DNA from: Selaginella moellendorffii
Lineage: Eukaryota; Plantae; Lycopodiophyta
Reading direction: 5' to 3'
DNA: 64,000 bases
Assembly (NCBI RefSeq): GCF_000143415.4
Contig: NW_003314282.1
Location: 1,631,374 to 1,695,373 of the forward strand
Made by a program: the position numbers and the translations under genes. Of this stretch, positions 2,860-50,121 are shown piece after piece. Numbering within the stretch: position 1 is the first letter of the stretch; every line of letters begins with the position of its first letter. The notes beneath the pieces were generated by a model. That model was given only the letters and a program-made list of their open reading frames with translations. It was not told where the DNA came from and did no database searches.

Positions 2860-3678
2860 CCAAGGCCTTGAAACTCAAGTTTTACTTCACTATCCTTAAA
2901 CATTTGACATATGGCATATGGCATATGGTATGTGACATGTGGCACATAGATGGTTTAGGTTTTACTTCAGGCATTTTGGTTCATTAACTTTGATATTGAA
3001 GTTAATATTTGCATTTGGCAATCATTGGTGATGATTGGCTGTCATATAAAATAGTTGATTATTTTTATCAAAGGTTTTGCTTGATTATTGTTGATCTAAA
3101 ATGATTTGCCATTCTTCAAGATGGCAGATTCCTTCTTTGACAATGATTATGTATCTCTTCATTGATAGGATGATTGATGATCTTTTATAATAGTTAGTTA
3201 TTTTCTTTTATAGCTTATGGCTTTTCGCATTACCATATATTCTTTATAATATGTTTTGGATTGGTCTCTTAGGTTTAAGATATTGATAGGATGTTGCCAA
3301 CGCTTGCTTAAGCAACTTAAGTTCCTTTGTATTATTAACTGATATTTATTTAAATTAGTTAGTGTGATAGTTGGTATGAATGCTATATTTGTTAGTTTTG
3401 CAACATTCATTCTATTCTGTTGATTGTTGTTATAGTTGGTTCTGATAGATTGGATGTTATTTCCTTTAAGTGATACATTCACAAGGGTTTTGTTTGCTAG
3501 TCAATGATACTTTGTGTTCTTTGAGTTATCTTATGTAAGTTGTGTAGTATGTTATTTGAAACCTTTGGTAGTTAAGTTTTATCCTTAAGTTTCTTGATGA
3601 TACAATAGTTATTAAATTTTGTTGGATAGTGAATCCTATGTTTTCCAATTATCATGATCTTGGTGATTCCTATACTAT
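2860..3678 (+). mobile_element. Family-A LTR 3' remnant plus an internal fragment of the non-coding LARD-like element
   Basis: 2860-2970 resembles the family-A LTR 3' part. 2970-3678 is colinear with about 36095-36800. Confidence 0.75.
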
Positions 3679-4533: not shown

Positions 4534-4705
4534 TTTGGTATTAGAGGAATTGTTTTAGCGATTCCTATCCAACTTTTGTCTGATTTTCTAACTCAAGTTG
4601 CATTCGCAGAGACTTTTCTAGTAGATCCGAGTGACCTATATAGGATTAGGTTGATTGCACCATTTGGTAAGAACGTTGTAAGCATGTTCAGTTATTGATA
4701 AAGAC

Positions 4706-7700
4706 ATGCATGCAGCTAGCGAGATGGTGAAAAGGAACCATGCTGATGATGCTAAAACCTCTAGACAGGCAAATCAAGAAGAGGAAACTCCTGCTAGAGA
4801 TGCTATGGAAGAGGCTGAGGCCAAGTCAGAAGAGGAAGAGCCAAATGCTGCGGCGTTGCAACGTACGGCTCAGGAAGTCGAGATCGAGAATTTGCGAAGG
4901 GAGATTCACAAATTCAAGAAGGAGAACAAGAAGAGGAAGAAAGAAGCTAAGGCAGTTAAACCAGCTAAGCCTAAGCAACCAGACTCCTCTTCAAGTTCTG
5001 CAGTCACACGAGTTTCAATGTTCAAGCCTCTGAAACCACCCAACTTCAGAGGCATGCGAGACTATCAAGTTTTAGAAGACTGGGTCTACGATATGGAAAA
5101 TTATTTCATAGCAGTAGATGTAGATGATCGTACGAAAGTTGTGTGCGTGCAATCCTTTCTCACCGATCATGCCAAAACTTGGTGGCGCCAGGTGTGTGCT
5201 GAAAAAGGGCAGACTAGAAGTTCGACCAAGATATGGTCTCGTATCCATAAGAAATACTTGCCGGATGATCTTGGTTTGAGACTTCGTGCGAAGCTACAAC
5301 GGTTAAAGCAGCGAGGGGACCTCATGCATTACGTTAATGTGTTTGCTCAAAAGCTCATTATGATTGCAAATATGAGTGACGAAGATGCTCAGAATTATTT
5401 CCTGAAGGGTTTAAGTTCACTTTGTCATAATGAGATTTTGAAGTTTAAGCCGAAGACGTACCTGGAGTGTAAGGAGGCAGCACAGCAAGTTGCCTTTAGC
5501 CATTCACTCATGGAACAATATCAGCATCCATATACTGGTACCTCGGACAAGAATAAGAATTCTAGGAATAAACAAGGTGATCAGAAATAGAGGGTGGAAG
5601 GCAAGTTCCACTCTGGGGGCTCACAAACAATGGTTAACAAAGGTGGTGGTGGTGATTGGAGACCACCAGCATCTTCTTCTGGTCCTAGGCCCTCTGTTCC
5701 TCCTCCTAGTAGGTACAAGCTGTAATAACCTGCAAAACCTGCCTCCTAGTGGAAAGGGTAGTATGGGTCATTGCTTCCATTGTGGAGAGCCAAGACATAA
5801 GTCTTTGGAATGTCCTAACAAGCATAAGACAAGGTCTCGTATTAATGTTATGAGGGAAGACAGTGGTGGTGAAGCTGAAGGGGTTGACGAGTTGGTCAAT
5901 ATAGACTATGAGGAAGAAAAGGTGAGTTACTTTCGTTGCTTTCCTCAAGCTTTTCTCGCAATCAATGCAAACACTGATCCGTTGATGTATCTGGTAGGCT
6001 TTGTCCATGGACACTGAATCCGAATGATGATTGACACGGGAGCTACCCATAGTGTGATATCCGAATACTTAGTTAAGTTGTTAGGATTGAATGCTGAGAA
6101 AATGTCGCCTATGCACTTCTGATTTGCGGAAGGTGGGCAAGTAGCCAGAAAATTTGTGAGTGATATTCCAATAAAAATATCCAAGTGGAAAGAAAGAGTG
6201 GACTTGGTAATGTTGAAGATACCAGATTTTCAAATGGTGTTTGGTATGGACTTCTTCAATAAATATATAAAAGGGATTTATGGTGTTGGACAAAGTCATA
6301 TCATGTTGAAGTCCGAAGAACGTCCCAATGTGTCCTTCTGGTTCCAAAAGCATTCCCAAAAGATTGGGATGCAAAGTTCCTAATTGCGAGGGCCGCTCAA
6401 AAAGTAGCTAAGAGGGGATGTTAGACCTTTTGGGTTCAAGTAATGGAGGCTGAGGGTGTTGGTGACTCAATTCAAATCGGCGACGGGGTTGATCATGTAC
6501 CAAAGAAGATATTGGAGTTGTTGGCGAAGAATCGGGATATCTTCCCAAAGGATTTACCACCAGGGCTACCTCCTAACTGTGAGGTTGATCATCGGATTGA
6601 GGTTATTCTGAGTTCTAAACCACCTATGAAAGCTCTGTATTGATTGAACATCAAGGAGATGGTTGAACTCAAGAAGAGCAAGTCATCTTATGGAGCGCCG
6701 GTCCTTTTTGTTATGAAAAAGGATGGAACCATGAGGATGTGTATTGACTATCGGGCACTCAACAAGATCACGATTAAAAATAGTTATCCTTTGCCACGCA
6801 TTGATGACTTGTTTGACTAACTCTTAAAGGCTAAGTATTTTACGCAACTTGATTTGCAATCCAGGTATCATCAGATACAGGTGGCAGATTAGGATGTGGA
6901 GAAGACAGCATTTAAGACACAATACGGATCTTATGAGTTCCTTGTCATGCCATTCGGGTTATGCAATGCTCCAGCAACGTTCAACACTATGATGGATAGA
7001 ATATTTGGAGATTATTTGGATCCATTTGTTGTCTTGTATATTGACGATGTTTTAGTCTTTAGTGAAACGTTGGAGGATCATTTGAAACACTTGGAGCTGG
7101 TGTTTTAGAAGTTGCACAAACACAAACTATATGCTAAGGAAAGTAAATGCGCTTTTAGTCAATTGCGCGTAGACTTTCTCAGACATATAGTTGGTGGTGG
7201 CATGATTGAAGTTGATCCAAAGAAGGTGGAAGCGGTGAAGTCTTGGGAAGTTTCGACCACTGTATCAGATGTTCGTTCCTTTCTTGGATTGGTGGGATAT
7301 TGTTGCAAGTTTGTCCACAATTTTGCAAGAATTGCTCTTCTGTTAACTGAGTTGACAAAGAGTAGTATTCTATTTCATTGGACACCAGCTTGTTAGCGTG
7401 CTTTTGTACAGTTGAAGGAGATCTTGACTACGTTTCCTGTTCTTAGGATCCCAGATCTTGAGAAACCCTTCAAAGTGCATTATGATGCATCGGGTTATGC
7501 TATTGGTGCTGTGTTGCAGCAAGATTGTGACAAAGCGGCTGGTGTTACGCTAAGGCGATATGGTTGTCCCGTTGCGTTCTATTCCAAGAAATTGGATGAA
7601 ACTCAACGAAGATGGCCAACACATGAGAAAGAGATGTTTGCTATAGTGTCGGCCCTGGAACACTGGAGACACTACTTGGGTGGAAACACCAAGGTTTATA

Positions 7701-14194: not shown

Positions 14195-16152
14195 GCCCTA
14201 ACCTCTTGCTCCACTGCTCTTATTTCTGCTTCTCCCCTCCTTAAAAAAAAAGGTCTGTTGTTCTCTTGGAGTTCAAGAGGCATCCTCTTCACCGTCTCCT
14301 CTGTTTTTGCTAGCTAGTTAGCTCTTACAAGAAGGAGCACAAGCCAAGTTCAGCTCCATGCTCAGCTCTATCATCTCCTCTTTAAGACACCTCACCTCTT
14401 TGAAGCCATTCAGGAGAGCTAGCACGCTTCACGTCTAGACTTCCCCCCCCCCCCCTTTTTTTTTGCGATTGTCTCTTCAAACTCATCATACTTATTTAAC
14501 TCACCAAACCTTACCAAGCCGAGTGCAGGCTTTGAAACCCCATGAGTCACCTTGGCCTTTTTCCATCTTCCAGTTGAGCTCTCCAACAATCTTGACGTGC
14601 GGATGTGTGCAAACTGCTCCTTGAGCCAGGACCATTTCTCCAGGAGATAACTTATGCTACAACACTCTCCGCTCGACGATCTCAATGTGGAAAGATCCAC
14701 AAAGCTGTCCCACTCATCATAGTTGTAGAAGAAATCATCCTCATACTGCATCTGCAACCTTGCTCGAGCCCAAGCCTCTGCCATCGCAAGCTTCTCCCTC
14801 ATCTTGATCAGCTCACACTTGAGGCGGCAAAACAAGTCCAGGTCCTGAGGAACAACAATGGAATACACCTTTCCCGGGTACCTGTCTCGAAACCTGTGAA
14901 AGTACAGTGGACGATGTGGTGTTTTAGATCGCAGCGGAATGATAACTTGATGAAAGCAACAAAACCATCAAGTGCATTAGTATCTTGCATGTTTAAATTA
15001 AACCATTGTGTAAGCATTATTCCATTTTGCTTGCTCTTTGGGGATCAATTATCATCTCCTCCTTTGAAGCAATGAGCAGTAGGCCTTGATCGCATCCAGA
15101 AGTACTAGAGATAGTCTGCAAAAGCAAGTTTGACACCAGTTATTTTGGCAACACAGAAGAAAAAGAAGAAAAATAAACTCAAGTTTCAAAATTTATAGAG
15201 ATCCATACAATCCAAATCAAGATCAATCCTCCGTGAACTTAATGCCGCTTTCAGGACCTCCAAGCTCTGCCAAAAAACGTAGCCATGGTATGCCACAATC
15301 GTTCGCTTGAAAATCTGAAGATGTCAATTGAAGCATGCAAGCAAAAACATGAAGTAAAGATGGACAACAAAGGAGATGAACTGAGCGAGGCCAAGAACCC
15401 ATATAAGGACTAAATGTAAGCACGTGAGGCCTCGCTCGGTTTTTTCCTCCGTGCGTGGCTTCATGTGCGAAGAGTTTGGTGTGGTAATGTATGTTGCGGA
15501 GCAGCCAGAAGCCCAGGGTGAATATAATTACGTGAGTCCTTGTGAGGTTTTACCACCGCCCGAGGACTCCTGTGCATGGGCCCCGGGCGAGAGTCATTTG
15601 CGAAAGTGTTCTGCATGAAACTGGAGCCCTGAGGTTTCTGGCCAAAGAGCATTTTTTATTTAATTTGTGTAGAGTGTGGTTTATTTTTGCATATTGAGTG
15701 TATCGATATCTTTTAGCTAGCAGATTATATTGAAGAACTGAAGACTACCTACAGTTAAGTGCATGCAGCAACAGATCATATAAAAAATGAATGCAGAGAA
15801 TAACAAATCGGGATTTCTAGGAAGTTTGTGCGTGTTGTTAGTAATAATAATAATAATCATAAAAACCTGATGTTCAGCCAGTTAGAAGATTGTCTGAAAA
15901 TTATGCATGTACTGATTCTTCAGCTCTTGAGCAACTGATTGCTGCTGGCTCACTTTCTATATATATCAAAGAGATTTTTTTTTAACAATAAACATCTAAG
16001 CTGCTGCAGTTAAGCTGTGACATTGTAAAGTTTAAAAAGGAAAAGAATTAGAAAAAGAAAAAACAGAAAACACTACTACAGTTAAGTAATAACAAATCGG
16101 GATTTCTAGGGTATGCGTGCGGCGCTAGGGTTTGTGTGGTGTGTGTCATTTC

Positions 16153-19100
16153 ATGGAGTGGAAAACGTTTTTCAGGGATCCCACTTTCTGGTGGGACGAC
16201 AGGTTCAAGAAGAAAAACAAGTTCTTCTCAGAGTCCTACCCGGATTTCAAACATGTGTCTACCGGAGAGAGCCTGTGGATCCCCAACAGGAAAACACCAA
16301 CCTGGGTCTCTGCAAAACTCGAGTCGCTCGCTGACCCAGCTGTAGGTAAGGCCACCACGGCCCGCTACAAATCTCCACATACCCCACCTGTAGCTGGTGA
16401 TGAACCGGTGAGTTTAGGGAGGCTGATACACCGCGTGAGAGACTCAGCTGAGAGCAGATCCCTTTCTTTGGGAAAACAAGCCCATGAAGCTGTGCTCAAG
16501 AGTGATGAGCACAAAAGCAACATCTACCTGTTGACGGGATTGATCGATATGTACTGCAAGTGTGGCGAGCTTGAGGAGGCTCGCAAGATTTTCGACTCCA
16601 TGGGAACCCGGAGTGTTGTGTCCTACAACGCGATCATCCAGGGCTGCGGCTCGAACGGGCAAGCTGAACTTGCTCTGGAGTACTACTCTGCCCTGAGAGC
16701 TTGTACCACCATTCAACCCAACGATCGGACACATGTCGCGGTGATCAGCGCCTGCTCCAGACTTGCTACCGAATCCAGCGAGAAGAGGGAGAGAGCTCTA
16801 CGGATCGGGATGGAGATCCATTCAATGCTGAGCAAGGAGATGAAACAGGTAGATCTGTTCGTGGCGACTTGCCTGGTAGACATGTACTGCAAGTGTGGCG
16901 AGCTTGAGGAGGCTCGCAAGATTTTCCACTCCATGGGAACTCGGAGTGTTGTGTCCTACACTGCGATCATCCAGGGCTGCAACACGAACGGGCGAGCTGA
17001 ACTTGCTCTGGAGTACTACTCTGCCCTGAGAGCTTGTACCACCATTCAACCCAACAATCGGACTCATGTCGCGGTGATCAGCGCCTGCTCCAGACTTGCT
17101 ACCGAATCCAGCGAGAAGAGGGAGAGAGCTCTACGCATCGGGATGGAGATCCATTCAATGCTGAGCAAGGAGAAGAAACAGGTAGATCTGTTCGCGGCGA
17201 CTTGCCTGGTAGACATGTACTGCAAGTGTGGCAAGCTTGAGGAGGCTCGCAAGATTTTCCACTCCATGGGAACTCGGAGTGTTGTGTCCTACACCGCGAT
17301 CATCCAGGGCTGCAACACGAACGGGCAAGCTGAACTTGCTCTGGAGTACTACTCTGCCCTGAGAGCTTGTACCACCATTCAACCCAACAATCGGACACAT
17401 GTCGCGGTGATCAGCGCCTGCTCCACAGTTGCTACCGAATCCAGCGAGAAGAGGGAGAGAGCTCTACGCATCGGGATGGAGATCCATTCAATGCTGAGCA
17501 AGGAGAAGAAACAGCTAGATCTGTTCGTTGCGAATTGCCTGGTAGAAATGTACTGCAAGTGTGGCGAGCTTGAGGAGGCTTGCAAGATTTTCCACTCCAT
17601 GGGAACTCGGAGTGTTGTGTCCTACACCGCGATCATCCAAGGCTGCAACACGAACGGGCGAGCTGAACTTGCTCTGGAGTACTACTCTGCCCTGAGAGCT
17701 TGTACCACCATCCAACCCAACAATCGGACTCATGTCGCGGTGATCAGCGCCTGCTCCACAGTTGCTACCGAATCCAGCGAGAAGAGGGAGAGAGCTCTAC
17801 GCATCGGGATGGAGATCCATTCAATGCTGAGCAAGGAGAAGAAACAGGTAGATCTGTTCGTGGCGAATTGCCTGGTAGACATGTACTGCAAGTGTGGCGA
17901 GCTTGAGGAGGCTCGCAAGATTTTCCACTCCATGGGAACTCGGAGTGTTGTGTCCTACACCGCGATCATCCAGGGCTGCAACACGAACGGGCGAGCTGAA
18001 CTTGCTCTGGAGTACTACTCTGCCCTGAGAGCTGATAACACCATTCAAGCTGATGCTTGCACCTACACCTGCGTCCTTGTTGCTTGCGGGAGTGTGATGG
18101 CGATCAAGCTCGGGAGGGAGATTCACCAGCTGGCGAAGCATAAAGGGCTGCTGAAAAACGATCCAGTTCTGGGCTCCAGCCTGGTGAGCTTCTACGGCAA
18201 ATGCGGCGATGTTGATTCTGCTCAGGAAGCGTTTGACGAGTGCCGAGCTCGGGACAACACGGGTCTCTGGAACTCTCTCATACAGGCTTACACTCTCCAG
18301 GGCCGATCGATCGAGGCCTTGGAGCGTTTCTATTCCATGACTCAGGAGGAGGGCTGTAAAGCTGACGATGTGAGTTTTGTCTCGGTGTTGAACGCTTGCA
18401 GCCATGGTGGTCTGGTCGGGAAAGGAAGGCAGCTTCTGGATGAAATGCCCAAGCAGTATGGAGTCAAGCCACGTCTGGAGCATTATGTGTGCCTGATCGA
18501 TATGCTCGGGCGAGCTAACCTCCTCGACGAAGCTGTGAGAGTTCTCAGAGCCATGCCTTTTGAACCGGATGCAGTGGTTTGGACGTCCCTGCTCGGAGCC
18601 TGCCGGAAGTGGAAGAATTACACGATCGGCAAACTCGCGTTTGAGCATCTTGTGGAGATGGATCCCAAGAGCGGCACGCCCTATGCATTGATGGCCAATA
18701 TATTTGGAAACCTGGGGATGCTCAGTGAAATGGCCGCTGTTGTGGAGAGAATGAGAGGTGAAGGCAGCTTCAGGGAGCCCGGGAGAAGCTGGTGGACGGA
18801 TATTAGCTCAGGAAAAGTGCATTCTTTTTCTGTCGGGGATAGGAGTCACTCACAGAGCGACGAGATTGCGGCCAAGCTCAAGCAATTGTTGTTGAGAATG
18901 AAAGAGGAGGGGTACGCAAGCGATGTGATCAACGTTCTAAAAGACATACCCAAGAAAGAGAAAGAGGATCACCTGTGCGGCCACAGTGAGAAGCTTGCGC
19001 TGGGGTGTGCTCTGGTGAACTCGCACCAGAAGGAGACCATCAGAATTGTGAAAAATCTCCGAGTTTGTGACGATTGCCATGCGGCCACTGCTCTCATCTC

Positions 19101-19191
19101 TAAGCTGGAAAAAAGGGTAATCATCTGCAAAGATGCCAGTCGGGTTCATGTGTTCCAGGATGGCAGATGTTCCTGTGACAACTACTTTTGA
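16153..19191 (+). CDS. PLS-E-DYW (WW-type) pentatricopeptide repeat RNA-editing factor with N-terminal OSB-type PDF motif
   Basis: Intronless ORF of about 1012 aa from the first in-frame ATG. Contains P-L-S triplets, P2-L2-S2, E1/E2, the box PGRSWWTD, HSEKLA and CDDC zinc ligands, and C-terminal CSCDNYF. N-terminus is WKTFFRDPTFWWDDR...YPDFKH..TGESLWI...PTWV. Confidence 0.95.
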   Translation: MEWKTFFRDPTFWWDDRFKKKNKFFSESYPDFKHVSTGESLWIPNRKTPTWVSAKLESLADPAVGKATTARYKSPHTPPVAGDEPVSLGRLIHRVRDSAESRSLSLGKQAHEAVLKSDEHKSNIYLLTGLIDMYCKCGELEEARKIFDSMGTRSVVSYNAIIQGCGSNGQAELALEYYSALRACTTIQPNDRTHVAVISACSRLATESSEKRERALRIGMEIHSMLSKEMKQVDLFVATCLVDMYCKCGELEEARKIFHSMGTRSVVSYTAIIQGCNTNGRAELALEYYSALRACTTIQPNNRTHVAVISACSRLATESSEKRERALRIGMEIHSMLSKEKKQVDLFAATCLVDMYCKCGKLEEARKIFHSMGTRSVVSYTAIIQGCNTNGQAELALEYYSALRACTTIQPNNRTHVAVISACSTVATESSEKRERALRIGMEIHSMLSKEKKQLDLFVANCLVEMYCKCGELEEACKIFHSMGTRSVVSYTAIIQGCNTNGRAELALEYYSALRACTTIQPNNRTHVAVISACSTVATESSEKRERALRIGMEIHSMLSKEKKQVDLFVANCLVDMYCKCGELEEARKIFHSMGTRSVVSYTAIIQGCNTNGRAELALEYYSALRADNTIQADACTYTCVLVACGSVMAIKLGREIHQLAKHKGLLKNDPVLGSSLVSFYGKCGDVDSAQEAFDECRARDNTGLWNSLIQAYTLQGRSIEALERFYSMTQEEGCKADDVSFVSVLNACSHGGLVGKGRQLLDEMPKQYGVKPRLEHYVCLIDMLGRANLLDEAVRVLRAMPFEPDAVVWTSLLGACRKWKNYTIGKLAFEHLVEMDPKSGTPYALMANIFGNLGMLSEMAAVVERMRGEGSFREPGRSWWTDISSGKVHSFSVGDRSHSQSDEIAAKLKQLLLRMKEEGYASDVINVLKDIPKKEKEDHLCGHSEKLALGCALVNSHQKETIRIVKNLRVCDDCHAATALISKLEKRVIICKDASRVHVFQDGRCSCDNYF
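16549..18033 (+). repeat. About 4.5 near-identical 333-bp tandem repeats (S-P-L triplet, 111 aa)
   Basis: ATGTACTGCAAGTGTGGC recurs at 16549, 16882, 17215, 17548 and 17881, exactly 333 bp apart. Confidence 0.97.
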
Positions 19192-19779
19192 AAACATGTC
19201 AGTGCTCTTTCTTGCAGTTATCCCTGGTTTTAAACCCTCCATGAGTCAAGCAGAAACATGGGCCGCTGAGTGAGCATGCCTCGTCAAAGTACCGCTGTCA
19301 ACCTGAACTTCACGGAGAAAAAATTAACATTTAAAAGTTAAAACTATGCAAAAGGAGGATGACACGTTGTCTTAAATTTAAATTTCTTTTTGGTAGCAGA
19401 ATCGGGAAATGCTGACTAAACCTGCCAACAGGTGCCCCAAAACGGAGCGCCCAGATTCAGATAATAAGCCTTAGTATGAAGGCTTGCCAGGCGAAGAGAA
19501 CCTGGAGAAAGAACTGGAACCAAACTCATTGATGATTATGCACAAGAGAAAAAGAGAGAAGCAAAAAGGTGAGAGAGAAGAAGAAAGCAACTTAATTCTT
19601 CTATTGCTGAGACCATGCTCCTGATTGATCTCGTTCAGGAAAACCATCTCGCGGGAGGGGGGGGAGAGCAGCCAGCATGTTCTCATGATGAAGACACAGC
19701 GCTGGAATCTCATCTTTCACCCTTTTGCTTTAGGGTTTAAATGCACATTGCGGATGACAAGAGCCCAGTGCTGCCTGAG

Positions 19780-21100
19780 AAGAAGACCGTGAACTTGAGG
19801 TTCGTCGGGCTGTGATTGGGAGGAGGTTTTGCATCGGCCTGTGGTGGGTGAAGCCTCGAAATGTCACCACCTGGAGTAAGTTTTCTTTGGAGTATTACGA
19901 TGTGGGGAGGTGGAAGAGGAAACTTCAGATGGAGAGGAGGACCTTCTTCACCATTTGTGGCATGCTGGAGAGCGAGATCCAGAATCAAGATACCGGTTGG
20001 AGGAGTGCAGTGCTGGTGGATGTTCGACTGGGGGTGACTTTGTACAAGCTTTTCAAGAACACAGATTACTTGGATCTGGTGGACAAGTTCGGCATCGGGG
20101 AGTCCACAGCTCATGAGATTGTCATGGACACTACTGCGGCGATTGTCAAGTGTCTCAGGTACAAGATTCATTTTCCTTCAACCGCCAAGGAGGTTCTAGC
20201 TGTTACTGCTGACTTTCGACAAGTGACAGGTACATTTTCTTATGTTTTTTGGATTGTTATAAGTTTTGATGACCAATAGGAACCCGACTGCCTAATGTTG
20301 CTGGGGCGATCGACTACTAGACTGGACGGCGAGAGCTACTACGACCAGAAGCAGCAGTACTCAGTCATCTTGCAAGGGGTTTGTGATGCCCAGAAGAGAT
20401 TCCTCAGTGTCTACGCTGGGTGGCCAGGTGTGTTTCTTTGTGTGTTGTGGATGGTTCTAAAATGTTCTTTTTGCTTTCAGGACGCGTCCCTGACACGAGG
20501 GTTTTTCGTAATTCAACCCTCAGGAACAAGATTGTAGCAAGGGAGCTGCTGACATCGCCCGCGGTGTTAGCATATGATGATAGGATCAAGCCATACCTGG
20601 ACAAAGGGTACCAACTCCAGCAGCATCTGATGATTCCACACACAAGTAAGTCTTCTTCATTCTACTTTCTTTTGTTCACTTGTTTTGGTTGTTGCTCACC
20701 TCCGAAGCCGACACCATCCAAGGCAGCTTTCAACCTTCATCACCACCTTGCTCAGATTGTTATTGAGCAAGCATTTGGACTTCTTAAAATGAATTTCAGA
20801 TGCTTGGATAAAAAACAAAGGATCCAGCCAAAGTACCTTCCCAACATCATCAAGAGTTGTTGCATCTTGCACAATTTCTTGATTGATGTTGGGGAGACTG
20901 ATCTTTTGGTGGAGATCCAAGCTTGGAGGAAAGAGGTGAAAAGGCTCAAGGACCAGGACCTCTTTGTCGATTACGGTGATCCCGAGCAAGTTGAAGGGGA
21001 GCCTCGTGAGGAGTTGCACAGTCCAGAGGATGCGAAAGAGGTTAGAGAGAACCTCACGTTTTCCCTCTGTCTTTGCCAGTGGCATTCGTGTTTGCTTTGA
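19780..21100 (+). mobile_element. PIF/Harbinger DDE transposase (HARBI1-like), intron-containing, probably defective
   Basis: MERRTFFTIC; LGVTLYKL...DKFGIGESTAHEI; GAID; YYDQKQQYSVILQGVCD...YAGWPG/RVPD; DKGY; FNLHH...IEQAFGLLK..FRCL; CCILHNF. Short GT-AG introns at about 20230-20279 and 20428-20480. There is a deletion after GAID. No TIRs were identified. Confidence 0.85.
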
Positions 21101-25479: not shown

Positions 25480-27040
25480 CGAGCCCTTAATAAAAATTAG
25501 CAAGAGATGCAAGACAAGATGTATGGCATGATGAGTACCTTGCGTGAGCATGTTGAGGCACTCGAGGCTGGTCATGGTGGCACTCCAAATAAACCTTCTT
25601 TGGTAGATTGACTCAAGATTCCAACCTTTTTCGGTGATGGTGGTGTGAATGAGTGTTTAGCTTGGCTAGCCAATGTGAAGAAGTTCTTGGTTGCTAGAGG
25701 AATTCCAGATGCAGAGGCTTTAATGGCTATTCTAATGGTTTTGTGTAATGCGGGTCTTCAGTGGTGGAATTGGCTTAAGAAGTCTTGTGCTGCGGATAAA
25801 AAACCATTAGTGTCTATGATGGATTAGTTTGAGGCTGCTTTCCATTTACATTTTGCCCTTCACTATGACATGGAGAATGCTCACACTGAACTTTGACATT
25901 TTCAGCAAGGGAAAATGAAGCTTGGGGACTATATTGAGAAGTTGACTCATTTGATTAGTCATGTTCCAACGAAGGATCCAAATCAAAACAAGTCCTACTT
26001 CATTGATGGCCTTCATAGTGAAATGTGCTGGCAGGGCCCTTGATCTTGNNNNNNNNNNNNNNNNNNNNNNNNNNNNNNNNNNNNNNNNNNNNNNNNNNNN
26101 NNNNNNNNNNNNNNNNNNNNNNNNNNNNNNNNNNNNNNNNNNNNNNNNNNNNNNNNNNNNNNNNNNNNNNNNNNNNNNNNNNNNNNNNNNNNNNNNNNNN
26201 NNNNNNNNNNNNNNNNNNNNNNNNNNNNNNNNNNNNNNNNNNNNNNNNNNNNNNNNNNNNNNNNNNNNNNNNNNNNNNNNNNNNNNNNNNNNNNNNNNNN
26301 NNNNNNNNNNNNNNNNNNNNNNNNNNNNNNNNNNNNNNNNNNNNNNNNNNNNNNNNNNNNNNNNNNNNNNNNNNNNNNNNNNNNNNNNNNNNNNNNNNNN
26401 NNNNNNNNNNNNNNNNNNNNNNNNNNNNNNNNNNNNNNNNNNNNNNNNNNNNNNNNNNNNNNNNNNNNNNNNNNNNNNNNNNNNNNNNNNNNNNNNNNNN
26501 NNNNNNNNNNNNNNNNNNNNNNNNNNNNNNNNNNNNNNNNNNNNNNNNNNNNNNNNNNNNNNNNNNNNNNNNNNNNNNNNNNNNNNNNNNNNNNNNNNNN
26601 NNNNNNNNNNNNNNNNNNNNNNNNNNNNNNNNNNNNNNNNNNNNNNNNNNNNNNNNNNNNNNNNNNNNNNNNNNNNNNNNNNNNNNNNNNNNNNNNNNNN
26701 NNNNNNNNNNNNNNNNNNNNNNNNNNNNNNNNNNNNNNNNNNNNNNNNNNNNNNNNNNNNNNNNNNNNNNNNNNNNNNNNNNNNNNNNNNNNNNNNNNNN
26801 NNNNNNNNNNNNNNNNNNNNNNNNNNNNNNNNNNNNNNNNNNNNNNNNNNNNNNNNNNNNNNNNNNNNNNNNNNTTTATGCTAGAGGGCATATTCTGTAG
26901 TGGTCTAATGTGGATTTTACTGGACAATGGGAGTGATGATAACTTTGTTTCCATAAAGTTTGTTAAGGAGCATGGCCTGGTGACACGAGAAGTTCTTCCA
27001 TACACAATGGAGTTTGAGGTGGAGTTCAAGATGGATTCCA
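25480..27040 (+). pseudogene. Degenerate gypsy gag plus aspartic protease, spanning an assembly gap
   Basis: WLANVKKFL...GLQWWNWL; FQQGKMKLGDYIEK; YFIDGL; protease ILLDNGSDDNFVS after the N-gap. Confidence 0.7.
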
Positions 27041-39010: not shown

Positions 39011-42000
39011 ACGTGGTTTTCACCCTTTATCCTATGGTGTTTTACCATAGAATAACCACAAAGAGTGGAATTTAAACCCTTTATATGCTATGTGTCATAT
39101 GCCACATGGCATATGCCACGTGTCCAAAGGACAATGGTGCGGAACCCAAATTTTAGGGCCTTGGGCCACTGAATGAAGGAAAGATGCCAAACTCCCAAGC
39201 ATGGAGCCAAGGAGCAATGGCATTGGAGCATGGAACAACTCTCAAGCATACAGCCCAAGAAGCGAAAGGATAGGAGCATAGAGCAATTTGGAATAGTCTT
39301 AGAGCATCTAACATCCCAATGTCAAGACTAGCACACAAAACAAAGCCAAATGGAGTTTGGTACTATTTTAGCATACTTGTGACCAATTGACAATAGCTTA
39401 CCCATGACTAAAGATTTCACTATGCACATAATGTGGCAAAGCCAATCTGCCTATACTGGCCAAACTCAAAGATCAATAGATGAACAATATTAAAGTCATA
39501 GACAATGATATCTTAGAGACTTAAGTATTAGTGATTAAATTTCAGATTAGAACACAAAAGTATTCCAAGTAAGTTATTATCCAATAAATCAGTATTAGAG
39601 TATAGGAACCACCAAGATCACAATAGTTGGAAATATAAGATTCACCATCCAACAAAATTCAATAGCTAATGTATCATCAAGGAAATTCAATGATAAAATT
39701 TAACTATTAAATATTTCAGATAGCATGCTACAACTTACGAAAGATAACTCAAAGAACACAAAGTATCATTGACTAGTAAGCAAAATGCTCGCGAATGTAT
39801 CACCAAAGGAAATAACATCTAAATCAATTAGAACTAACTTGAGCAATAATTAGCAGAACAAAATGAATGTTGTAAAGTAAACAAACATTCAGTCATGCCA
39901 ACTATCGCACTAGCCAATATGAATAGATTCCAGTCAACAATACAAAGGAACTCAAGTTTCTTAAACAAGTGTCAGCAACATCCTATTGATGTTTCAAACC
40001 CAAAGACCAATTCAGAGCAAACCACAAAGAACATGTGGTAATGCAAAAACACAGAAGCTATCAAAGATAACAATTAACCATTATGAAATATCATTAATCC
40101 TCTCATCAAAAGAGAGATGCATAATCATTGTCAAAGAAGGAATCTACCATCCCGAAGAATGGTAACTCATTCTATATCAATAACAATCAAGCAAAACCTT
40201 TGACAAGGATAATCAATTATCCTAGATGATGGTCAATCATCACCAATGATTGTTAAATGCAAGTACTAACTTCAACATGGAAGCTATGAGCTAGAATGCC
40301 TTCCCCAACAATTTTTAACAAATGGAATAATGAGCATAAAAACTCAAGGAACTAAAAGTTCAAAGAAGTTTATATCCAAGTTGTGCCTAACAATGATCAC
40401 AAGTTTTGTATGAACTAACTTTAATGCTAAAGAAAAAATCATGGTATAATCAATATCCTTCTCAACACATCTATAAGCCAAACTTCATAATGTCAAAGTT
40501 AATGAAGAGCATATCTGCATCAATCTAAAAGCCAAGCACAATGAAGCTATACTTAACAAGTGATCATTAAACAATCCTCCATGAATTCATCTATAGCAAA
40601 AAGTAATTCACTTCATAACAAGCTCAAAAAGAATCATCAATGATTGATATATTCCAACTCAAATCCAATAAGGATTCAAACATTCCAATACCAATCACTA
40701 ACTCTTCCTCTTGTAAAGATAGCATTGTCCATGACTAAATCACTTTTCAAGGAAAAGCTTAAAGATCAACCCCTACTAAACAATCTCGTCTAGAACACAA
40801 CTAACACAACTTGCCACTCAGCTCGTTTAATAAGGCTATAGTATAGGTACTAACATCTTAACTTCAAACAACTAAGTTGGATATCACTATCCTCAGTTAA
40901 GGTGTAGGGCTATCAAGACCAAGTTAAGATCAATGAGAACTCATTACTTTCATAAAGTTTAACAAAATGCAAAGTGCAACCTACCACCAAACACAATGCT
41001 ATAGAAGAAAGGCACAAGGGTCACCTTTCTAGAGAAGTGTAATGGCCATTTTTCTACACCAACTCCAGATTCTATCCAACTCAATTGCTTTAGCCCCAAA
41101 AGTCAGCATCCCTTTTTAGGTCGCAACTACCTATTAAAGTCTAAGCTAACAAAAGTTCACTCTAAACCCTTCACTAGTTGTATTGGCTTACAAAAACGGA
41201 ATGGTTTTCGGGCAAAATAATCAACAAATCAACTATTGGAAAAGTTTAAGAAAAATTTATGGAAAATTTTCCATCCTAGAGAAAAAATGACTCTTAGTCT
41301 AAGAATATATACTTTCAAGACTCAACCAACTTCCTCCTACCAACAACTTCACATATGTTCACCTCAACATAAATCCTCAAAACCCATAGTATGCTTAAGC
41401 CTCAAACATCATACCCATTTTTCAACATCTAACACCGATATTCATAAAATGCAAAATGAACATCTAAAGCTTGATCATGAAGGCCACATTTTTGGATATC
41501 CACATTGCACTAACACTTTTTTTTAACCATTTTCAAGATTCAATGTAAAGCCAAAACACTAACAAGAAAAATGACATGAAAAAACAAGCTTTAAGGAAAA
41601 TTTCTCACCACTCAAAATAACAATGTCATCTCCACTAGCACAAGTGCTAGCAATGCTAATACCTCAACTTTACACTTTCACCATCCAATAATCTACTCCA
41701 AGTGCTAACGGATAAACCAACAAACCATAGCAAGTGAATGTTATGCCCTTTTCCAACACTTAATGAGCAAACCCTCAAGGAAATAAAGTACTAAATTAAG
41801 CTTAGCATAATGGACCATCATTGAGAATTCAGTTAAAGCTACTACAATGCTATTATATGTNNNNNNNNNNNNNNNNNNNNNNNNNNNNNNNNNNNNNNNN
41901 NNNNNNNNNNNNNNNNNNNNNNNNNNNNNNNNNNNNNNNNNNNNNNNNNNNNNNNNNNNNNNNNNNNNNNNNNNNNNNNNNNNNNNNNNNNNNNNNNNNN

Positions 42001-44770
42001 NNNNNNNNNNNNNNNNNNNNNNNNNNNNNNNNNNNNNNNNNNNNNNNNNNNNNNNNNNNNNNNNNNNNNNNNNNNNNNNNNNNNNNNNNNNNNNNNNNNN
42101 NNNNNNNNNNNNNNNNNNNNNNNNNNNNNNNNNNNNNNNNNNNNNNNNNNNNNNNNNNNNNNNNNNNNNNNNNNNNNNNNNNNNNNNNNNNNNNNNNNNN
42201 NNNNNNNNNNNNNNNNNNNNNNNNNNNNNNNNNNNNNNNNNNNNNNNNNNNNNNNNNNNNNNNNNNNNNNNNNNNNNNNNNNNNNNNNNNNNNNNNNNNN
42301 NNNNNNNNNNNNNNNNNNNNNNNNNNNNNNNNNNNNNNNNNNNNNNNNNNNNNNNNNNNNNNNNNNNNNNNNNNNNNNNNNNNNNNNNNNNNNNNNNNNN
42401 NNNNNNNNNNNNNNNNNNNNNNNNNNNNNNNNNNNNNNNNNNNNNNNNNNNNNNNNNNNNNNNNNNNNNNNNNNNNNNNNNNNNNNNNNNNNNNNNNNNN
42501 NNNNNNNNNNNNNNNNNNNNNNNNNNNNNNNNNNNNNNNNNNNNNNNNNNNNNNNNNNNNNNNNNNNNNNNNNNNNNNNNNNNNNNNNNNNNNNNNNNNN
42601 NNNNNNNNNNNNNNNNNNNNNNNNNNNNNNNNNNNNNNNNNNNNNNNNNNNNNNNNNNNNNNNNNNNNNNNNNNNNNNNNNNNNNNNNNNNNNNNNNNNN
42701 NNNNNNNNNNNNNNNNNNNNNNNNNNNNNNNNNNNNNNNNNNNNNNNNNNNNNNNNNNNNNNNNNNNNNNNNNNNNNNNNNNNNNNNNNNNNNNNNNNNN
42801 NNNNNNNNNNNNNNNNNNNNNNNTCACAACATAGACAAACTCCTGCCACCTTTTTCCAACTAAACTCAAAACTAATCTAACACCAAGCTACTCAAGGAGC
42901 AATAGCAAGGTTCTCCGGAAAAGAATTGAGCATTGTAACCTAAGTCTTTTAATAACAAGTTTAGACAAAATGGTTTAGCACTTCACCGCTATCCATCCCA
43001 TAATTCACCATTTATAAGACCATCATTTCCAAATGCATCAAGGTAGAGACTCTTTATTGCATGACATGTGTATGAGCAATGTGTAAACACCTTATTGCAA
43101 ATCATCTCTCCAAGAAGAAAAAATGATTTACGTGTTTGATCTTTTGTCTTTGATAACTCTCTTTTCGATCTCATCTTTAACTAAGCTTTCTTTCACACTG
43201 CCTTCAGTCCAATCCAAGAAAAGTTTATAAGAGAGCATGGCAATGATTACTTGAACCAATAGACTAATCCCTATAGTCTTGATTGATCCACTTGTAATCA
43301 TGTCTAGGAAGGATCCACTAGTGCCGTGCTAAACAGCTACAGACCAGTCTATTTGCCACTCATAACAAACCCAGGGAGGTTTGCTTTCACCCACAGTACA
43401 TGGAACAACTCATGAAACCACCGATAGGCTAACATTAATCCTGCCAACTCAAAGTGTAACCTCGAGTTGCTAATATGCTTCACTCACAAGCGCAAGTGCA
43501 AACTGCTGCAAACAGAATAACTAAGTCCATCTTATGAGCCCAAGAGCAAGCTCACATAATAGGTACAAAAAGTAACCAAAATCCATACCTAAAGAACAAA
43601 TGCGAAGCCTTTACACCTAAATGTATACCCACTTGGATCATTGTTTTCATCTCTGTATCAGCAACGAGACTAGTTGCCCAATCTCATTGGATAATACTTG
43701 CTGAGAAATATCCTCTGATACCACGTGCCACATGCCATGTGTCCAAAGGATAGTGGTGTGGAGCCTGAGTTTCAGAGTCTTGGGCCATTGAATGAAGGAA
43801 CAGTGCCAAACTCCCAAGCATGGAGCCAAGGAGCAATGACACTGAAGCACGGAATGACTCCTGAGCATCCAGCCCAAGGAATGAAGGGACAGGAGCACGG
43901 AGTAACTTGGAACAGTCCTAGAGCATTTAGCATCCCAATGCTAGGACTAGCACACAAAACGGAGCCAAATAGAGTCTAGTGCTATTTTAGCATACAAGTG
44001 GCATAACGCGAGGATATGGGTACTATACCAACTAGCATGTTATGGAACTTGGGCTTAAACCCAATATAAGCAACCAAAGGGAACGATTCGAGAGACGATC
44101 CATAGGGGTTCAAATATAGAGGGAAAGGGCCCATGAATAAGAGTGCACCCCCTTTTCCAATCGATCAAGGGTCTTGGGATAGTTGAAGTTAAGTGTCCTT
44201 GGGTTTGAATAGTATTGGGCTGAATGACCTCCTGGGAAGTCCAAAATCAGGAGCTTACATTTGGTATCAGAGGGGTCTCGGGTCCGACTCTGTTGGTTGG
44301 CTAGGGGAATCGCACCACATGTTGATTGACATCTGGCTGGTCTAGTTTGCTCCCGCTGGGCTCGACCCGAGGGGTAGGGTGTCAAGAGAGCGGGGCTTTC
44401 GGGAGAGCTGCGGCTCTCAGCTTCCGTTCACGAGGGCGTGAACTTGCAGGGAAGCGTGGTGGATTGTAAGCAACCAAAGGGAACGATTCAAGAGACGATC
44501 CATGGGGTTCAAATATAGAGGGAAAGGGCCCATGAATAAGAGTGCACCCCCTTTTCCAATCGGTCAAGGGTCTTGGGATAGTTGGAGTTAAATGTCCTTG
44601 GGTTTGAATAGTACTGGGTTGGATGACCTCTCGGGAAGTCCAAACTCAGGAGCTTACACCCAAGTCAAACGCATAACAAAGACAGACACACAAGCAGGAG
44701 CTAGACTATGCCTCAGGTTGGTCAGCCATGCCCAACCCACTATCCTTACTATACATTTGGAGACCCTGAA
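39011..44770 (-). mobile_element. Inverted, older, deleted copy of the family-A LARD-like element
   Basis: 39011-39385 is reverse-complement LTR. 39386-43723 is reverse-complement internal region with deletions and a gap, and PBS complement CTCTGATACCA at about 43713-43723. 43724-44770 is reverse-complement LTR interrupted by the TRIM. Confidence 0.88.
44065..44658 (+). mobile_element. Cassandra-type TRIM with 5S rRNA-derived LTR segment
   Basis: LTRs 44065-44259 and 44465-44658 (T[G/A]TAAG...CTTACA), PBS TTTGGTATCAGAG at 44260, a 205-bp interior and TSD CCCAA. 5S-like AGTTAAG...GACCTCCTGGGAAGTCC at 44187-44242 and 44586-44641. Confidence 0.93.
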
Positions 44771-47700: not shown

Positions 47701-47892
47701 ATGGCAAAAGAAACCCGTTTGCTCGAGGAAGCTGTGTAGTTGCTTCACATTGGTTGGTGGGTTCCGATCCAAAATCTCTTGAGCCTTGGCTACCTGGGGC
47801 TTGATCCCATCCTGCGAGACATCAAAGCCTAGCAACCGGCCTTCAGTCACCTCGAATTTACACTTCGCCGGGTTCAATGAAAACCTGTGTTG

Positions 47893-49173
47893 TCAACAGC
47901 GAGTGAAGATTTTCTCCAAGTGCACAAGGTGGTTCTCAAAGGAGTCAGAGGTCGTGCACAGATCTTCCATATACACCCTCAAAGCACCTCCAATCAAGTC
48001 GTGAAAGGCATGGGTCATAAAGCGCTGAAAAGTAGCTCCGGCATTACATAAGCCAAACGAGAGGACGTTGAAAGCGAAGACGCCCCAAGGTGTCCAGAAG
48101 GCCGTAAGATCTCGATGATCAGGATGAATGAATATCTGGTTGTACCCTAAAAAGCCATCCATGAAAGAGTAGTAACAGTGTCCAGCCATTTCATCCACAA
48201 TCGCATCAATAAATGGAGTTGGAAAGTGATCTTTCGCAGTTGCCTTGCTCAAGTCTTGAAAGTCAACACAGAGGTGGAGTTTTCCATTTGCCTTGCGTGC
48301 AGGGATGATATTGGCCACCCACTCTGAGCTCCCCAAAGGGTAAATAAAGCCGGCTGCCAAAAGTCGCTTGATCTCCAACTTCATCTCTAAGTGAGCTGCC
48401 GGGCTGAAACGCCGCATCTTTTGACAGATTGGTTTGGCTGCCTCTAAAAGCACAATACTGTGCATGATTGTGTCCATGGGAACTCCTAAAAGCTGGCTGT
48501 AGTCCCAAGCAAACACATCCTTGAAACAGTGAAGGAGATCCAAGAGCTTTGTTGCGTTTGTTGGAGCAAGCGATGTGGCGATAAAGAACGGGTCCTTGTC
48601 ATCACCTAGGAAAATGGCATGAACCCTAGAGTCTGGAGAAACCTTTGGCTCATCTATCTTTGATTCCTCCCTAACCCTGGAAACCAAAGAGTAGGGAGTG
48701 CCTTTTGCCTCTCGCATCATGGTGATTGCTTGATATGATAACCTGTCTACCCAAAAGTTTTCTTCATGAGGAACACTTTGAAAAGTCACTTGAGAGAACT
48801 CATCCTTCAAGTTGACTACCCACTGCCATAGCTCTTTTAGGTTCTCTTTGTAGACTTGGTATTCTCCAGTAAGTTGGCGTATGATGAGTTGCGCATCTCC
48901 AACGAAAGTGACTTGCCTAAACTTGAGACATGTGACCAACTTCATGGCATTGATGGCTGCCAAGTACTCTGCTTCATTAGCTAATGTTGCTGGCAAAGTG
49001 ATAGAGAGGTCGGCTACTTTGTTCTCCGCAGAATTAATCATCCAAACTCCAATGCCGGCAACCTGGTTTTTGGGGCAGAAAGCAGCATCAAAATAAGCTG
49101 TAATCATAGGAGTGTCCTCTTCCTTAAATAAAGATGCTAAGAACACCACATCCAGCAAGACCCTTTCTGGCAA
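47893..49173 (-). pseudogene. Additional (archaeal-type) RNase H plus reverse transcriptase of the Tat element
   Basis: YFDAAF...GIGV...NEAEYLAAI...GDAQLIIRQL..EY...VPHEENFWVDRLS precedes DVFAWD...LCVDFQDL...MDGFLGYNQI...FGLCNAGATFQR...YMEDL. Confidence 0.9.
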
Positions 49174-50121
49174 GTCTGGTAAGAATGTTGTTGTTAGATC
49201 TGGAGTCTTTGTTTGTTGTTCTCATTGCTTCTAATGCTTTAAGTGCTCAATGTCCAATGCAAGGACTGTAGCCAAGTACTCTGCAAGTGAAGGAAGATCC
49301 TCCACCGAAGTCCAGTCCAAGTCGGGTGCTGAAGTTTCAGTGTAATACACTTGGATCTGTACCAAGAGCTCCATGGTAGGAAATTTTGAACTCAAAGAGC
49401 TATAACTTGTATGCAGCACGTTCGATTGGCTTGATGCTTTTTGCCAATTGTGTGTCTGGATGTCATCTTCCGTCTCCAAGAAACGGCATGACAAAATACA
49501 CTCGGAGTCGTTAGCTATCACAATTTTAGTAGGAAGACACGGGCTGTGTGACACCTCAAATAGTTGTTGAGGAGAATTGAGTTCAGCTGTGTCCTGTGAA
49601 AGATGAACCTAGTCTGGAGTGACTATGTCATCAAGCTCCATAAGAGAGAGTTGGTCCCATGTAAGAAATGAATAAAAAAGCCCTTCCTCTATCAAGAAAC
49701 ACTCTGGAAAGTTGGATATAGGAGCCCGTACCCTATAAGCCCTGCTATCAAATAAAAAGGGTGTGGCGAGGGGCTTGGCCTTACTCTCAAATAAAGAGAG
49801 TGAAGTTGAGAGATGTCTCAAGCTATCTGACCCACCTCCAACCATGTCAATCACATTGCATGAGAAAGCATTAGTCATATAGATGGTTGATTCCACTGCC
49901 AACTCAAGAAAAACCTTTGTGAGTTCAGAAGGAAAGTATGGTGTGGAAGCCATCTTAGTCCGAGCTTGCTGGGCTTGCTGAGAAAGAGCTCTGCCGTGGT
50001 TGTTGAGAAAGGTGGCGCTATGGGTTCCATCCCTAATTTCCAGCTTGCCTTGTGTGCTATCAATGGTGCAATGGGCTCTGACTTGCCATGAGCGGACAAG
50101 GATGACAAAGTCTTTCAAAGA

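Follow-up and report, generated by a model that had tools for sequence, protein, structure and literature searches.

The window analyzed here is a 64,000-nucleotide stretch of the Selaginella moellendorffii genome (contig NW_003314282.1, positions 1,631,374 to 1,695,373). It contains a long open reading frame (ORF) that runs from an ATG at 16153 to a TGA stop at 19189 to 19191 with neither an internal stop nor an intron (Table 1). A preliminary description of this locus had claimed that a PDF motif, as found in organellar single-stranded DNA (ssDNA)-binding proteins, continues in one uninterrupted frame into a full PLS-E-DYW protein that retains HxE and CxxC. This claim holds for the 1012-codon ORF, which keeps both HSEK and CDDCH, and the N-terminal peptide quoted at the time was right except that its first two residues (M and E) were omitted. 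An artifact of the gene model or the reading frame was ruled out, as the window copy and the paralogues L001, L005, L006, and L007 each form one open PDF-PPR-DYW ORF. The surroundings of the gene are transposon rich, with a Ty3 gag fragment, a Harbinger-type transposase, and RT/RNase H fragments. A poly(A) remnant, sought 3′ of the gene as a mark of a retrocopy, was not seen.

Table 1. Features of the PDF-PPR-DYW locus in window coordinates
Feature	Position	Strand	Content or basis
Main ORF	16153..19191	+	1012 codons + stop; PDF, linker, PLS PPR array, E, E+, DYW
Upstream ORF, 73 aa, out of frame with main ORF	16113..16334	+	ORF list; six-copy alignment
PDF motif, OSB type (aa 2-59)	16156..16329	+	phmmer, non-PPR PDF profile, conserved columns, AlphaFold2
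Linker (aa 61-83), Pro/Thr/Ala-rich, predicted disordered	16333..16401	+	AlphaFold2 model of aa 1-270, pLDDT <50
PLS-class PPR array	16414..18615	+	Pfam PPR families, model helices, motif parsing
Tandem 333-bp (111-aa) S-P-L modules, 4.5 copies, 96% identity	16549..18048	+	Tandem Repeats Finder
E (E1/E2) and E+ motifs	18616..18900	+	Pfam PF20431, PF20430
DYW cytidine deaminase domain	18910..19188	+	Pfam PF14432, E = 1.6e-30
DYW motifs: HSEK, CDDCH, C-terminal CSC..NYF	18982-18993, 19066-19080, 19168-19188	+	Motif coordinates

Arabidopsis OSB1 to OSB4 are plant organellar ssDNA-binding proteins (OSB2 is pTAC9), and the PDF motif was reportedly defined in 2006, by Zaegel et al., as an OSB-type ssDNA-binding motif of ~50 amino acids, recognizable by its P-D-F signature with W/WW, K/R, LW, and P.WV positions on either side. 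A phmmer search with the N-terminal 61 residues of the window protein against 1.84 billion representatives gave 407 matches at an E value of ≤1e-3, among them named OSB proteins (OSB1 of Populus, with an E value of 8e-15, and OSB3 of Euphorbia). A profile of 343 PDF instances from non-PPR proteins, whose members were themselves gathered by similarity to the window, matched amino acids 2 to 59 across profile positions 2 to 59 of 60 (65.1 bits; E = 2e-22). A 141-sequence PDF alignment has 13 columns that are invariant or nearly so, and the window protein keeps all of them (W3, P10, W13, D15, R17, K20, P30, D31, F32, L41, W42, P49, and W51), with the P-D-F signature itself at amino acids 30 to 32; inside the conserved WWDNR there is an N-to-D change. 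The phmmer matches, the profile score, and the conserved columns together rule out a chance resemblance. At the sequence level, residues 2 to 59 are confirmed as a true OSB-type PDF motif, in frame with a complete PLS-E-DYW protein.

A Pfam search gave no match in the first 117 residues of the window protein because Pfam has no PDF model, and a word-index search with the N terminus returned two Selaginella paralogues only, reflecting the limited sensitivity of that method. AlphaFold2 predicted the PDF alone with a pLDDT of 92.6 and produced the same fold within a model of amino acids 1 to 270, and on these models the PDF is a genuine small domain of alpha/beta type that folds independently. 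No known fold was matched: the best Foldseek E value against the PDB was 4.9, VIA-align against 48,161 chains gave Z scores of at most 2.3, and the PDB sequences retrieved with the window protein matched only its PPR part.

In the model of amino acids 1 to 270, PPR helices begin at about amino acid 88. The array comprises about 20 motifs in all, including five near-identical S-P-L units followed by P2-L2-S2, and the succession of a P-L-S array, P2-L2-S2, and E1/E2 (Pfam PPR, PPR_1, PPR_2, E_motif, and Eplus_motif) places the protein in the PLS class. The S-P-L unit variants are shuffled among paralogues, and paralogues also differ in their P-motif code residues, which read NN, TN, TN, TN, and TD across the five P motifs in the window copy. 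A restriction of this variation to PPR code positions proved only partly true, as P12, P13, L13, and L43 vary besides P5 and P-last; the pattern fits a mosaic made up of two or three types of unit. The signature residues of the DYW domain are intact, including the PG box PGRSWW (amino acids 876 to 881), HSEK (944 to 947), CDDCH (972 to 976), and the terminal CSC..NYF. PLS-E-DYW proteins carry out site-specific C-to-U RNA editing in plant organelles.

S. moellendorffii has at least seven near-identical intronless copies of the gene, and the six copies besides the window copy keep ORFs of 800 to 1053 codons. The unique coding parts are 98 to 99% identical among copies, compared with 90 to 92% for the flanks; gene conversion could be an alternative account of the high identity of the coding parts. 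The pairwise ratio of nonsynonymous to synonymous substitution rates (dN/dS) ranges from 0.2 to 0.9 and reaches 0.95, values that very few changes underlie, and for the PDF alone the ratio is uninformative, with 0 to 2 changes per pair. In two of the six other copies (L005 and L008), compensated indels put the first half of the PDF out of frame while the PPR-DYW frame is kept, so the PDF is dispensable or decaying in part of the Selaginella subfamily. The window copy has roughly 8 to 9 private amino acid changes. The RefSeq models of five aligned Selaginella copies, at roughly 500 amino acids, wrongly splice tandem PPR repeats away, a systematic error that we flag here. A more distant Selaginella relative, P0095, shares 37% identity with the window protein and is colinear with it from the PDF to the E motif. 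Its PDF is the closest to that of the window (58 to 62% identity) and contains an intron, at a position common to both Adiantum PDFs and absent from one Populus OSB gene.

In an alignment of six copies, the window copy shows a deletion of 11 nucleotides within its leader. As a result, the first ATG (16113), which is the in-frame start codon in L001 and L006, is out of frame and opens an overlapping upstream ORF of 73 codons. Translation of the window copy must therefore begin at 16153, and L007 likewise starts at this inner ATG. The stretch ahead of the PDF is just 2 residues long in the window copy, compared with 19 in L001, and with almost no presequence ahead of the PDF, organellar import of the window protein is not evident.

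Transcript evidence came from Logan contigs, which break at tandem repeats. No contig covered positions 14500 to 16470 at ≥97% likeness. This gap is no proof that the 5′ part is absent from transcripts, as the same RNA-like runs contain 62% of the 31-mers of positions 16113 to 16548 (the PDF and linker region). Contigs over positions 18019 to 19488 differ from the window at 14 to 15 sites, where they carry family-consensus alleles; at 10 to 13 of 14 differing sites, the paralogues share the contig base, and a G or C of the contigs is replaced by A or T in the window at 10 of the 14. A single transcript joining the PDF to the DYW domain in the window copy was not obtained from the Logan contigs.

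Nonexhaustive searches yielded 88 checked PDF-PPR proteins, which belong to Sphagnum, Calypogeia, Diphasiastrum, Selaginella, Adiantum, Ceratopteris, and transcriptome records. A DYW match was present in 47 of the 88, and 40 keep HxE and CxxCH; seed plants were absent from the proteins that these searches found. The PDF is N terminal to the PPR array in every protein checked. It lies roughly 6 to 10 residues from the first PPR in most of nine homologues (the exception being Diphasiastrum P0260), and in most homologues it is preceded by a Ser/Arg-rich presequence of 40 to 110 residues. Mean pairwise identities among PDF-PPR proteins are 0.73 for the PDF, 0.77 for the DYW domain, and 0.64 for the PPR and E region; judged by these values, the conservation of the PDF in the PPR context equals that of the catalytic DYW domain. 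On a tree of PDF sequences, the PPR-linked PDFs cluster, with 4 label changes compared with 16.7 in shuffles (none of 500 shuffles was as low). One ORF covers both the PDF and the PPRs in EukProt P0188 (a Trinity-named sequence) and in a 4.7-kb Logan contig. A look-up of the Diphasiastrum proteins P0147 and P0149 gave no locus. The PDF-PPR architecture is old, and it is widespread among liverworts, peat mosses, lycophytes, and ferns.

No account of the fusion was found in the literature that could be searched. The preliminary description was right that canonical editing factors lack such a module, insofar as characterized factors are not described with one, and a functional description of the architecture was likewise not found in that literature. 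The fusion is not rare: annotated but nameless homologues are plentiful in Selaginella, Diphasiastrum, Sphagnum, and Calypogeia as well as in ferns.

PPR arrays align in parallel with the RNA that they bind: the most N-terminal motif takes the 5′ nucleotide, and the site of DYW action lies just 3′ of the footprint. The account that we favor, with moderate confidence, is that the window gene is a young, intronless member of a multicopy Selaginella PLS-E-DYW group whose inherited OSB-type PDF serves as a 5′ anchor for single strands. The PDF would have been inherited from an old land plant lineage of PDF-PPR proteins. Because the array binds RNA in parallel and the PDF is N terminal, the motif would be placed at the 5′ side of the RNA footprint, where it may be an accessory anchor that holds single-stranded nucleic acid, irrespective of sequence, upstream of the PPR footprint. 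Such anchoring would increase affinity for the transcript or residence time on it, and the PDF would not present the substrate to the deaminase. In the Selaginella subfamily, the anchor would hang on a flexible linker of ~25 residues, while in bryophytes and Diphasiastrum, it adjoins the first PPR. The ssDNA binding of OSB proteins has been attributed to the PDF motif (PMC4166229, PMC6963530), and OSB1 and OSB2 favor ssDNA over RNA (PMC4166229), which makes an RNA-anchoring role an extrapolation.

A considerably bolder reading, which we regard as rather doubtful, is that PDF-capped PPR(-DYW) proteins form an ancient, unrecognized class of land plant organellar RNA-editing factors in which the OSB-derived PDF supplies the generic single-strand affinity, or the nucleoid or R-loop tether, that MORF/RIP-type cofactors provide in seed plants. 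Seed plants have such cofactors as separate proteins, and their lack of representation among the 88 proteins from the nonexhaustive searches agrees with the idea of a PDF in place of MORF.

The anchor account has to be weighed against the possibility that the family architecture is real and the window copy itself is a silent or decaying duplicate, its ORF being open owing to youth or gene conversion. We consider this less likely than the anchor reading, although plausible. The leader deletion, with its out-of-frame ATG at 16113 and overlapping 73-codon ORF, is consistent with silencing, as are the differences from the contigs (with which the paralogues mostly side, the window having A or T at 10 of 14 sites), the private amino acid changes (the N-to-D change in WWDNR among them), pairwise dN/dS values of up to 0.95, and the transposon-derived neighbors. 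However, all 1012 codons are open, the PDF and DYW signatures are complete but for that N-to-D change, and the coding parts are much more conserved than the flanks. Furthermore, contigs lose rare variants, so missing window alleles do not prove silence, and L007 also begins at the inner ATG.

The remaining alternatives concern what the PDF does. The preliminary description had put forward three possible roles, namely tethering to nucleoids or transcription bubbles, substitution for MORF-type cofactors, and deamination of ssDNA. The PDF may retain an OSB-like preference for ssDNA and tether the editor to nucleoids, R-loops, or the nontemplate strand for cotranscriptional editing, as the binding preference of OSB proteins would suggest (PMC4166229, PMC6963530, PMC6451138) and as the predicted flexibility of the linker in the window protein would permit. 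In most homologues, however, the PDF adjoins the first PPR and resembles an extended RNA-binding surface rather than a free tether, and we think this role unlikely. That the PDF of PPR proteins binds no nucleic acid at all, being instead a module for protein-protein contacts or oligomerization or part of an uncleaved import signal, seems more improbable still: AtOSB2 is tetrameric (PMC6963530, PMC6451138) and the basic PDF occupies the presequence position in the Selaginella copies, but oligomerization of OSB proteins may or may not involve the PDF, most homologues have a separate presequence ahead of the PDF, and the conserved W, F, K, and R residues are typical of single-strand binders. Deamination of ssDNA by the DYW domain, as a mutator or DNA editor, is suggested only by the fact that one ORF encodes both an ssDNA-binding motif and a cytidine deaminase, and we regard it as very improbable. 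The two domains sit at opposite ends of the array of about 20 motifs, with the PDF on a linker predicted to be disordered, the target is chosen by the PPR array on RNA (the established PPR-RNA polarity), and the PG box, HxE, and CxxCH mark the DYW domain as one of the canonical type for C-to-U RNA editing.

The PDF may bear on how PPR-DYW editors in early-diverging land plants function without the MORF/RIP helpers of seed plants, and heterologous assays of editing are available for proteins of this kind, as established in E. coli for moss PPR56 and PPR65. Deletion or swapping of the PDF therein offers a directly testable handle on binding and editing. If the PDF does replace cofactors, its loss or gain should alter editing efficiency or cofactor dependence, and the module could serve engineered PPR editors. 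The PDF is a conserved accessory domain that is invisible to Pfam and has probably been overlooked by domain surveys; dozens of DYW proteins carry it, in lineages ranging from liverworts to ferns. The motif now extends beyond the OSB proteins, the sole context in which we found it described, and has a confident structure prediction in spite of lacking a solved relative.

Compared with OSB proteins, the window protein has a PDF of ~55 residues with all of the conserved W, P, D, F, K, and R positions, but unlike them, it has no OB-fold or SSB-like domain according to Pfam. The motif lies N terminally, ahead of an RNA-binding array, whereas in OSB proteins it follows the OB fold. The PPR-linked PDFs also stand apart from OSB PDFs on the tree, and two of their lineages share an intron absent from the one OSB gene checked. 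By these features, the window protein is not an OSB protein, having only the PDF module in common with that family.

With PLS-E-DYW editors such as moss PPR56 and PPR65 and the Arabidopsis DYW-type factors, the window protein shares the PLS triplets, P2-L2-S2, E1/E2, E+, and a DYW domain with a PG box, HxE, CxxCH, and a C-terminal CSC..(D/N)Y(W/F). It differs from them in its N-terminal PDF, which we have not found described for characterized factors, its five near-identical tandem S-P-L units, and its almost complete lack of a presequence. The PDF-PPR-E proteins of Selaginella (XP_024517303, P0095), other lycophytes, and ferns have the same colinear PDF, PLS array, and E motif but lack a DYW domain, the E motif being their last. 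Some bear one to three PDFs, and an intron lies within the PDF of P0095 and of the Adiantum gene, whereas the window family is intronless. The order PDF-PLS-E-DYW, with the active site intact, recurs in unnamed or hypothetical proteins of Sphagnum, Calypogeia fissa, and Diphasiastrum complanatum. In these homologues, a presequence of 40 to 110 residues precedes the PDF and a gap of about 6 to 10 residues separates it from the PPRs in most of those examined, whereas the window protein has a 2-residue N terminus and a linker of ~25 residues that is predicted to be disordered.

The plus-strand ORF in the window opens with an ATG at 16153, ends with a TGA at 19189-19191, and runs for 1012 codons without an internal stop. 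The uninterrupted frame that the preliminary description had read from the PDF motif through PLS-E-DYW is therefore present, and its coordinates and peptide were also correct, save for the initial M-E missing from the quoted peptide. In the protein, Pfam identified multiple PPR families, the E and E+ motifs, and a DYW_deaminase domain (E = 1.6e-30). This domain keeps the PG box, HSEK, CDDCH, and the CSC..NYF end, in agreement with the earlier claim that HxE and CxxC are retained. Residues 1 to 117 gave no Pfam domain because the PDF motif has no Pfam model.

The 50-amino-acid PDF motif is described as the element through which OSB proteins bind ssDNA, and OSB1 and OSB2 prefer ssDNA over dsDNA or RNA (PMC4166229, PMC6963530, PMC6451138). 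The proposed OSB-type PDF at the N terminus was borne out by three analyses. Using phmmer with window residues 1 to 61 against 1.84 billion representative proteins, we obtained 407 hits with E ≤ 1e-3, of which 112 had E ≤ 1e-10; in many of the hits, the motif matched 2 to 13 times in tandem. Proteins named OSB1 (Populus) and OSB3 (Euphorbia) were among them. A profile of 343 PDF instances, taken only from proteins without PPRs and gathered by similarity to the window, aligned residues 2 to 59 with profile positions 2 to 59 of 60 (65.1 bits; E = 2e-22). Finally, the window PDF has all the invariant or nearly invariant columns of a 141-sequence alignment (W3, P10, W13, D15, R17, K20, P30, D31, F32, L41, W42, P49, and W51).

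With the same alignment, AlphaFold2 modeled window residues 1 to 61 (model madc0db5fca04) at a mean pLDDT of 92.6 and a pTM of 0.77. The PDF is thus predicted with high confidence to be a small alpha/beta domain, consisting of a helix (residues 2 to 8), a strand (13 to 15), a helix (17 to 21), a strand (32 to 34), a short strand at about residue 40, and a helix (50 to 59). The model found no relative in the PDB by Foldseek (best E = 4.9) or among 48,161 chains by VIA-align (best Z = 2.3), and a PDB sequence search with the window protein matched the PPR part only. This lack of a detectable solved-structure relative holds equally for the PDF motif of OSB proteins. In a model of residues 1 to 270, the PDF adopted the same fold as alone, residues 61 to 83 had a pLDDT of <50, and PPR helices began at residue 88; the PDF is therefore predicted to form its own module, joined to the array by ~25 flexible residues.

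We surveyed the co-occurrence of PDF, PPR, and DYW, as the preliminary description had proposed, and found PDF-PPR proteins in lycophytes and ferns and also in Sphagnum and the liverwort Calypogeia fissa. They occur in Diphasiastrum, two Adiantum species, Ceratopteris, and many Sphagnum species, as well as on transcriptome or metagenome contigs; no seed plant was among the fusions found in these nonexhaustive searches. One or more PDFs lie N-terminal to the array in all 88 PDF-PPR proteins checked, of which 47 match DYW and 40 retain both HxE and CxxCH. Three PDFs and a PPR array share one ORF in each of two sequences from other species: the EukProt record P0188, which has a Trinity-type name, and the Logan contig L004 (4.7 kb). 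Most homologues carry a presequence of 40 to 110 residues, and in most of nine examined, roughly 6 to 10 residues separate the PDF from the first PPR motif, the exception being the Diphasiastrum protein P0260. Among 35 PDF-PPR-DYW proteins, mean pairwise identity was 0.73 for the PDF, 0.77 for the DYW domain, and 0.64 for PPR+E (0.49, 0.49, and 0.34, respectively, in the most divergent pairs). On the PDF tree, PPR-linked PDFs cluster, with 4 label changes versus 16.7 in shuffles (0 of 500 shuffles were as low), and may have a single origin.

The PDF nearest to that of the window on this tree belongs to a second Selaginella gene, P0095. Its 910-amino-acid product aligns colinearly with the window protein (37% identity) over the PDF, the entire array, and the E motif, where it ends, unlike the window protein with its DYW domain. 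In the P0095 gene, an intron interrupts the PDF immediately behind the conserved basic residues, and an Adiantum PDF-PPR gene has one at the same position in both of its PDFs, unlike a Populus OSB1-like gene (L009), whose PDFs are uninterrupted. In the window family, this intron is missing, consistent with an origin by retrocopying; at the window gene, no poly(A) remnant that would mark a retrocopy is visible.

The closest database proteins are five S. moellendorffii RefSeq models of ~495 amino acids, annotated as generic PPR proteins. In these models (XP_024536012 and relatives), the tandem PPR repeats and part of S2 are removed as "introns," while the underlying loci (L001:6001-9090, L005, L006, and L007; GCA_000143415.2) hold uninterrupted ORFs of 800 to 1050 codons. 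The splicing is probably a systematic annotation artifact on repeat-rich PPR genes. Counting an inverted copy in L007, S. moellendorffii has at least seven copies of the PDF-PPR-DYW gene. Between the copies compared, unique coding parts are 98 to 99% identical and flanks 90 to 92%, with many gaps, a pattern that purifying selection or gene conversion, or the two together, could produce; pairwise dN/dS, calculated from few changes, was 0.2 to 0.9.

Positions 16549-18048 of the window comprise 4.5 copies of a 333-bp S-P-L PPR unit at 96% identity. In the window, the five P motifs have NN, TN, TN, TN, and TD as their fifth and last residues; the corresponding pairs are ND, ND, TD, TD, and ND in L001 and NN, TN, ND, TD, and TD in L007. 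Given these code residues (N or T at the fifth position, N or D at the last), the paralogues would be predicted to read different RNA sequences. Among 21 units compared, P5 and P-last were among the most variable columns, and P12, P13, L13, and L43 were equally so, consistent with a mosaic assembled from a few types of unit, as opposed to change restricted to the code positions.

The (GT)n-like leader tract carries indels in every copy. L001 and L006 have an in-frame upstream ATG, which adds 17 residues; in L007 and in the window, where an 11-nt deletion is present, that ATG is out of frame. Translation of the window copy must therefore begin at 16153. Indels that compensate each other keep the upstream ATG in the PPR-DYW frame in L005 and L008, and the first half of the PDF is read out of frame there. 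Four of the six copies compared thus retain an intact PDF.

All expression data were Logan contigs. Four runs from four studies were RNA-like, with no contig over intergenic positions 14500-16075, and two of them had GT..AG-skipping contigs in the neighboring gene. Logan contigs cover 16564-19490. At 14 to 15 sites, a 1.4-kb 3′ contig departs from the window and has paralogue-common alleles; among 14 such sites, 10 have A or T in the window and G or C in the contigs. No contig matched 16076-16469 at ≥97% likeness. Of the 31-mers sampled from 16113-16548, 62% are present in the RNA-like runs, which therefore contain the PDF-coding region of the family. Activity of the window copy, one of several, is uncertain.

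The surrounding region is transposon rich. GT..AG joints at 20227-20278 and 20227-20319 were seen in the downstream transposase region, in contigs of two runs (X3 and X13). ORFs listed across either of the two N runs, which are assembly gaps, are artifacts.

Features of the window and of related PDF-PPR loci
Feature	Location	Strand	Remarks
Window uORF	16113-16334	+	73 codons, opened by out-of-frame upstream ATG
Ty3-type gag, LTR retrotransposon fragment	4682-5587	+	
Harbinger/PIF-type DDE transposase (DDE_Tnp_4) fragment	20387-21097 (region 19779-21097)		Directly downstream of PPR gene
RT and RNase H fragments, LTR retrotransposon	47293-49221	-	
Assembly gap	26049-26874		N run, 826 bases
Assembly gap	41861-42823		N run, 963 bases
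L001 ORF			1029 codons
L005 ORF			1028 codons
L006 ORF			801 codons, fewer repeats
L007 ORF			1053 open codons
L008 ORF			About 1021 codons, C terminus changed
Second PDF-PPR-DYW copy in L007	8206-9201	-	Inverted, ~2 kb downstream of first, scaffold GL377722.1
PDF motif split by intron, P0095 gene	L002:3078-3149		
PDF motifs split by intron, Adiantum gene	L003:3078-3172 and 3516-3577		

The preliminary description was thus right on the identity of the parts, while the role of the fusion is unproven. The PDF is a conserved domain, predicted to fold independently, that forms the N terminus of an otherwise complete protein of the editing-factor type. PPR proteins bind RNA with the N-terminal motif on the 5′ nucleotide, and the DYW domain acts just 3′ of the footprint. 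From this polarity, the PDF would lie at least ~20 nucleotides 5′ of any cytidine to be edited, where it would most plausibly add sequence-nonspecific single-strand affinity. The same geometry argues against PDF-guided deamination of ssDNA, which we consider unlikely. The main rivals to an added single-strand affinity are tethering of the protein to the nucleoid or ssDNA by the PDF, which fits OSB biochemistry, and a role of the PDF in protein interaction or import.

We found no description of a PDF combined with PPRs in the searchable literature, and the PDF-PPR-DYW architecture is apparently both widespread and undescribed. Neither OSB nor PDF is mentioned in a survey of editing-factor domain fusions from 2026 (PMC13386178), and an OSB survey from the same year accepted only proteins with an OB fold as well as a PDF (PMC13393729). 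By Pfam, the window protein has no OB fold and so differs from OSB proteins; in every testable respect, it has the features of a PLS-E-DYW PPR protein together with those of a PDF motif.
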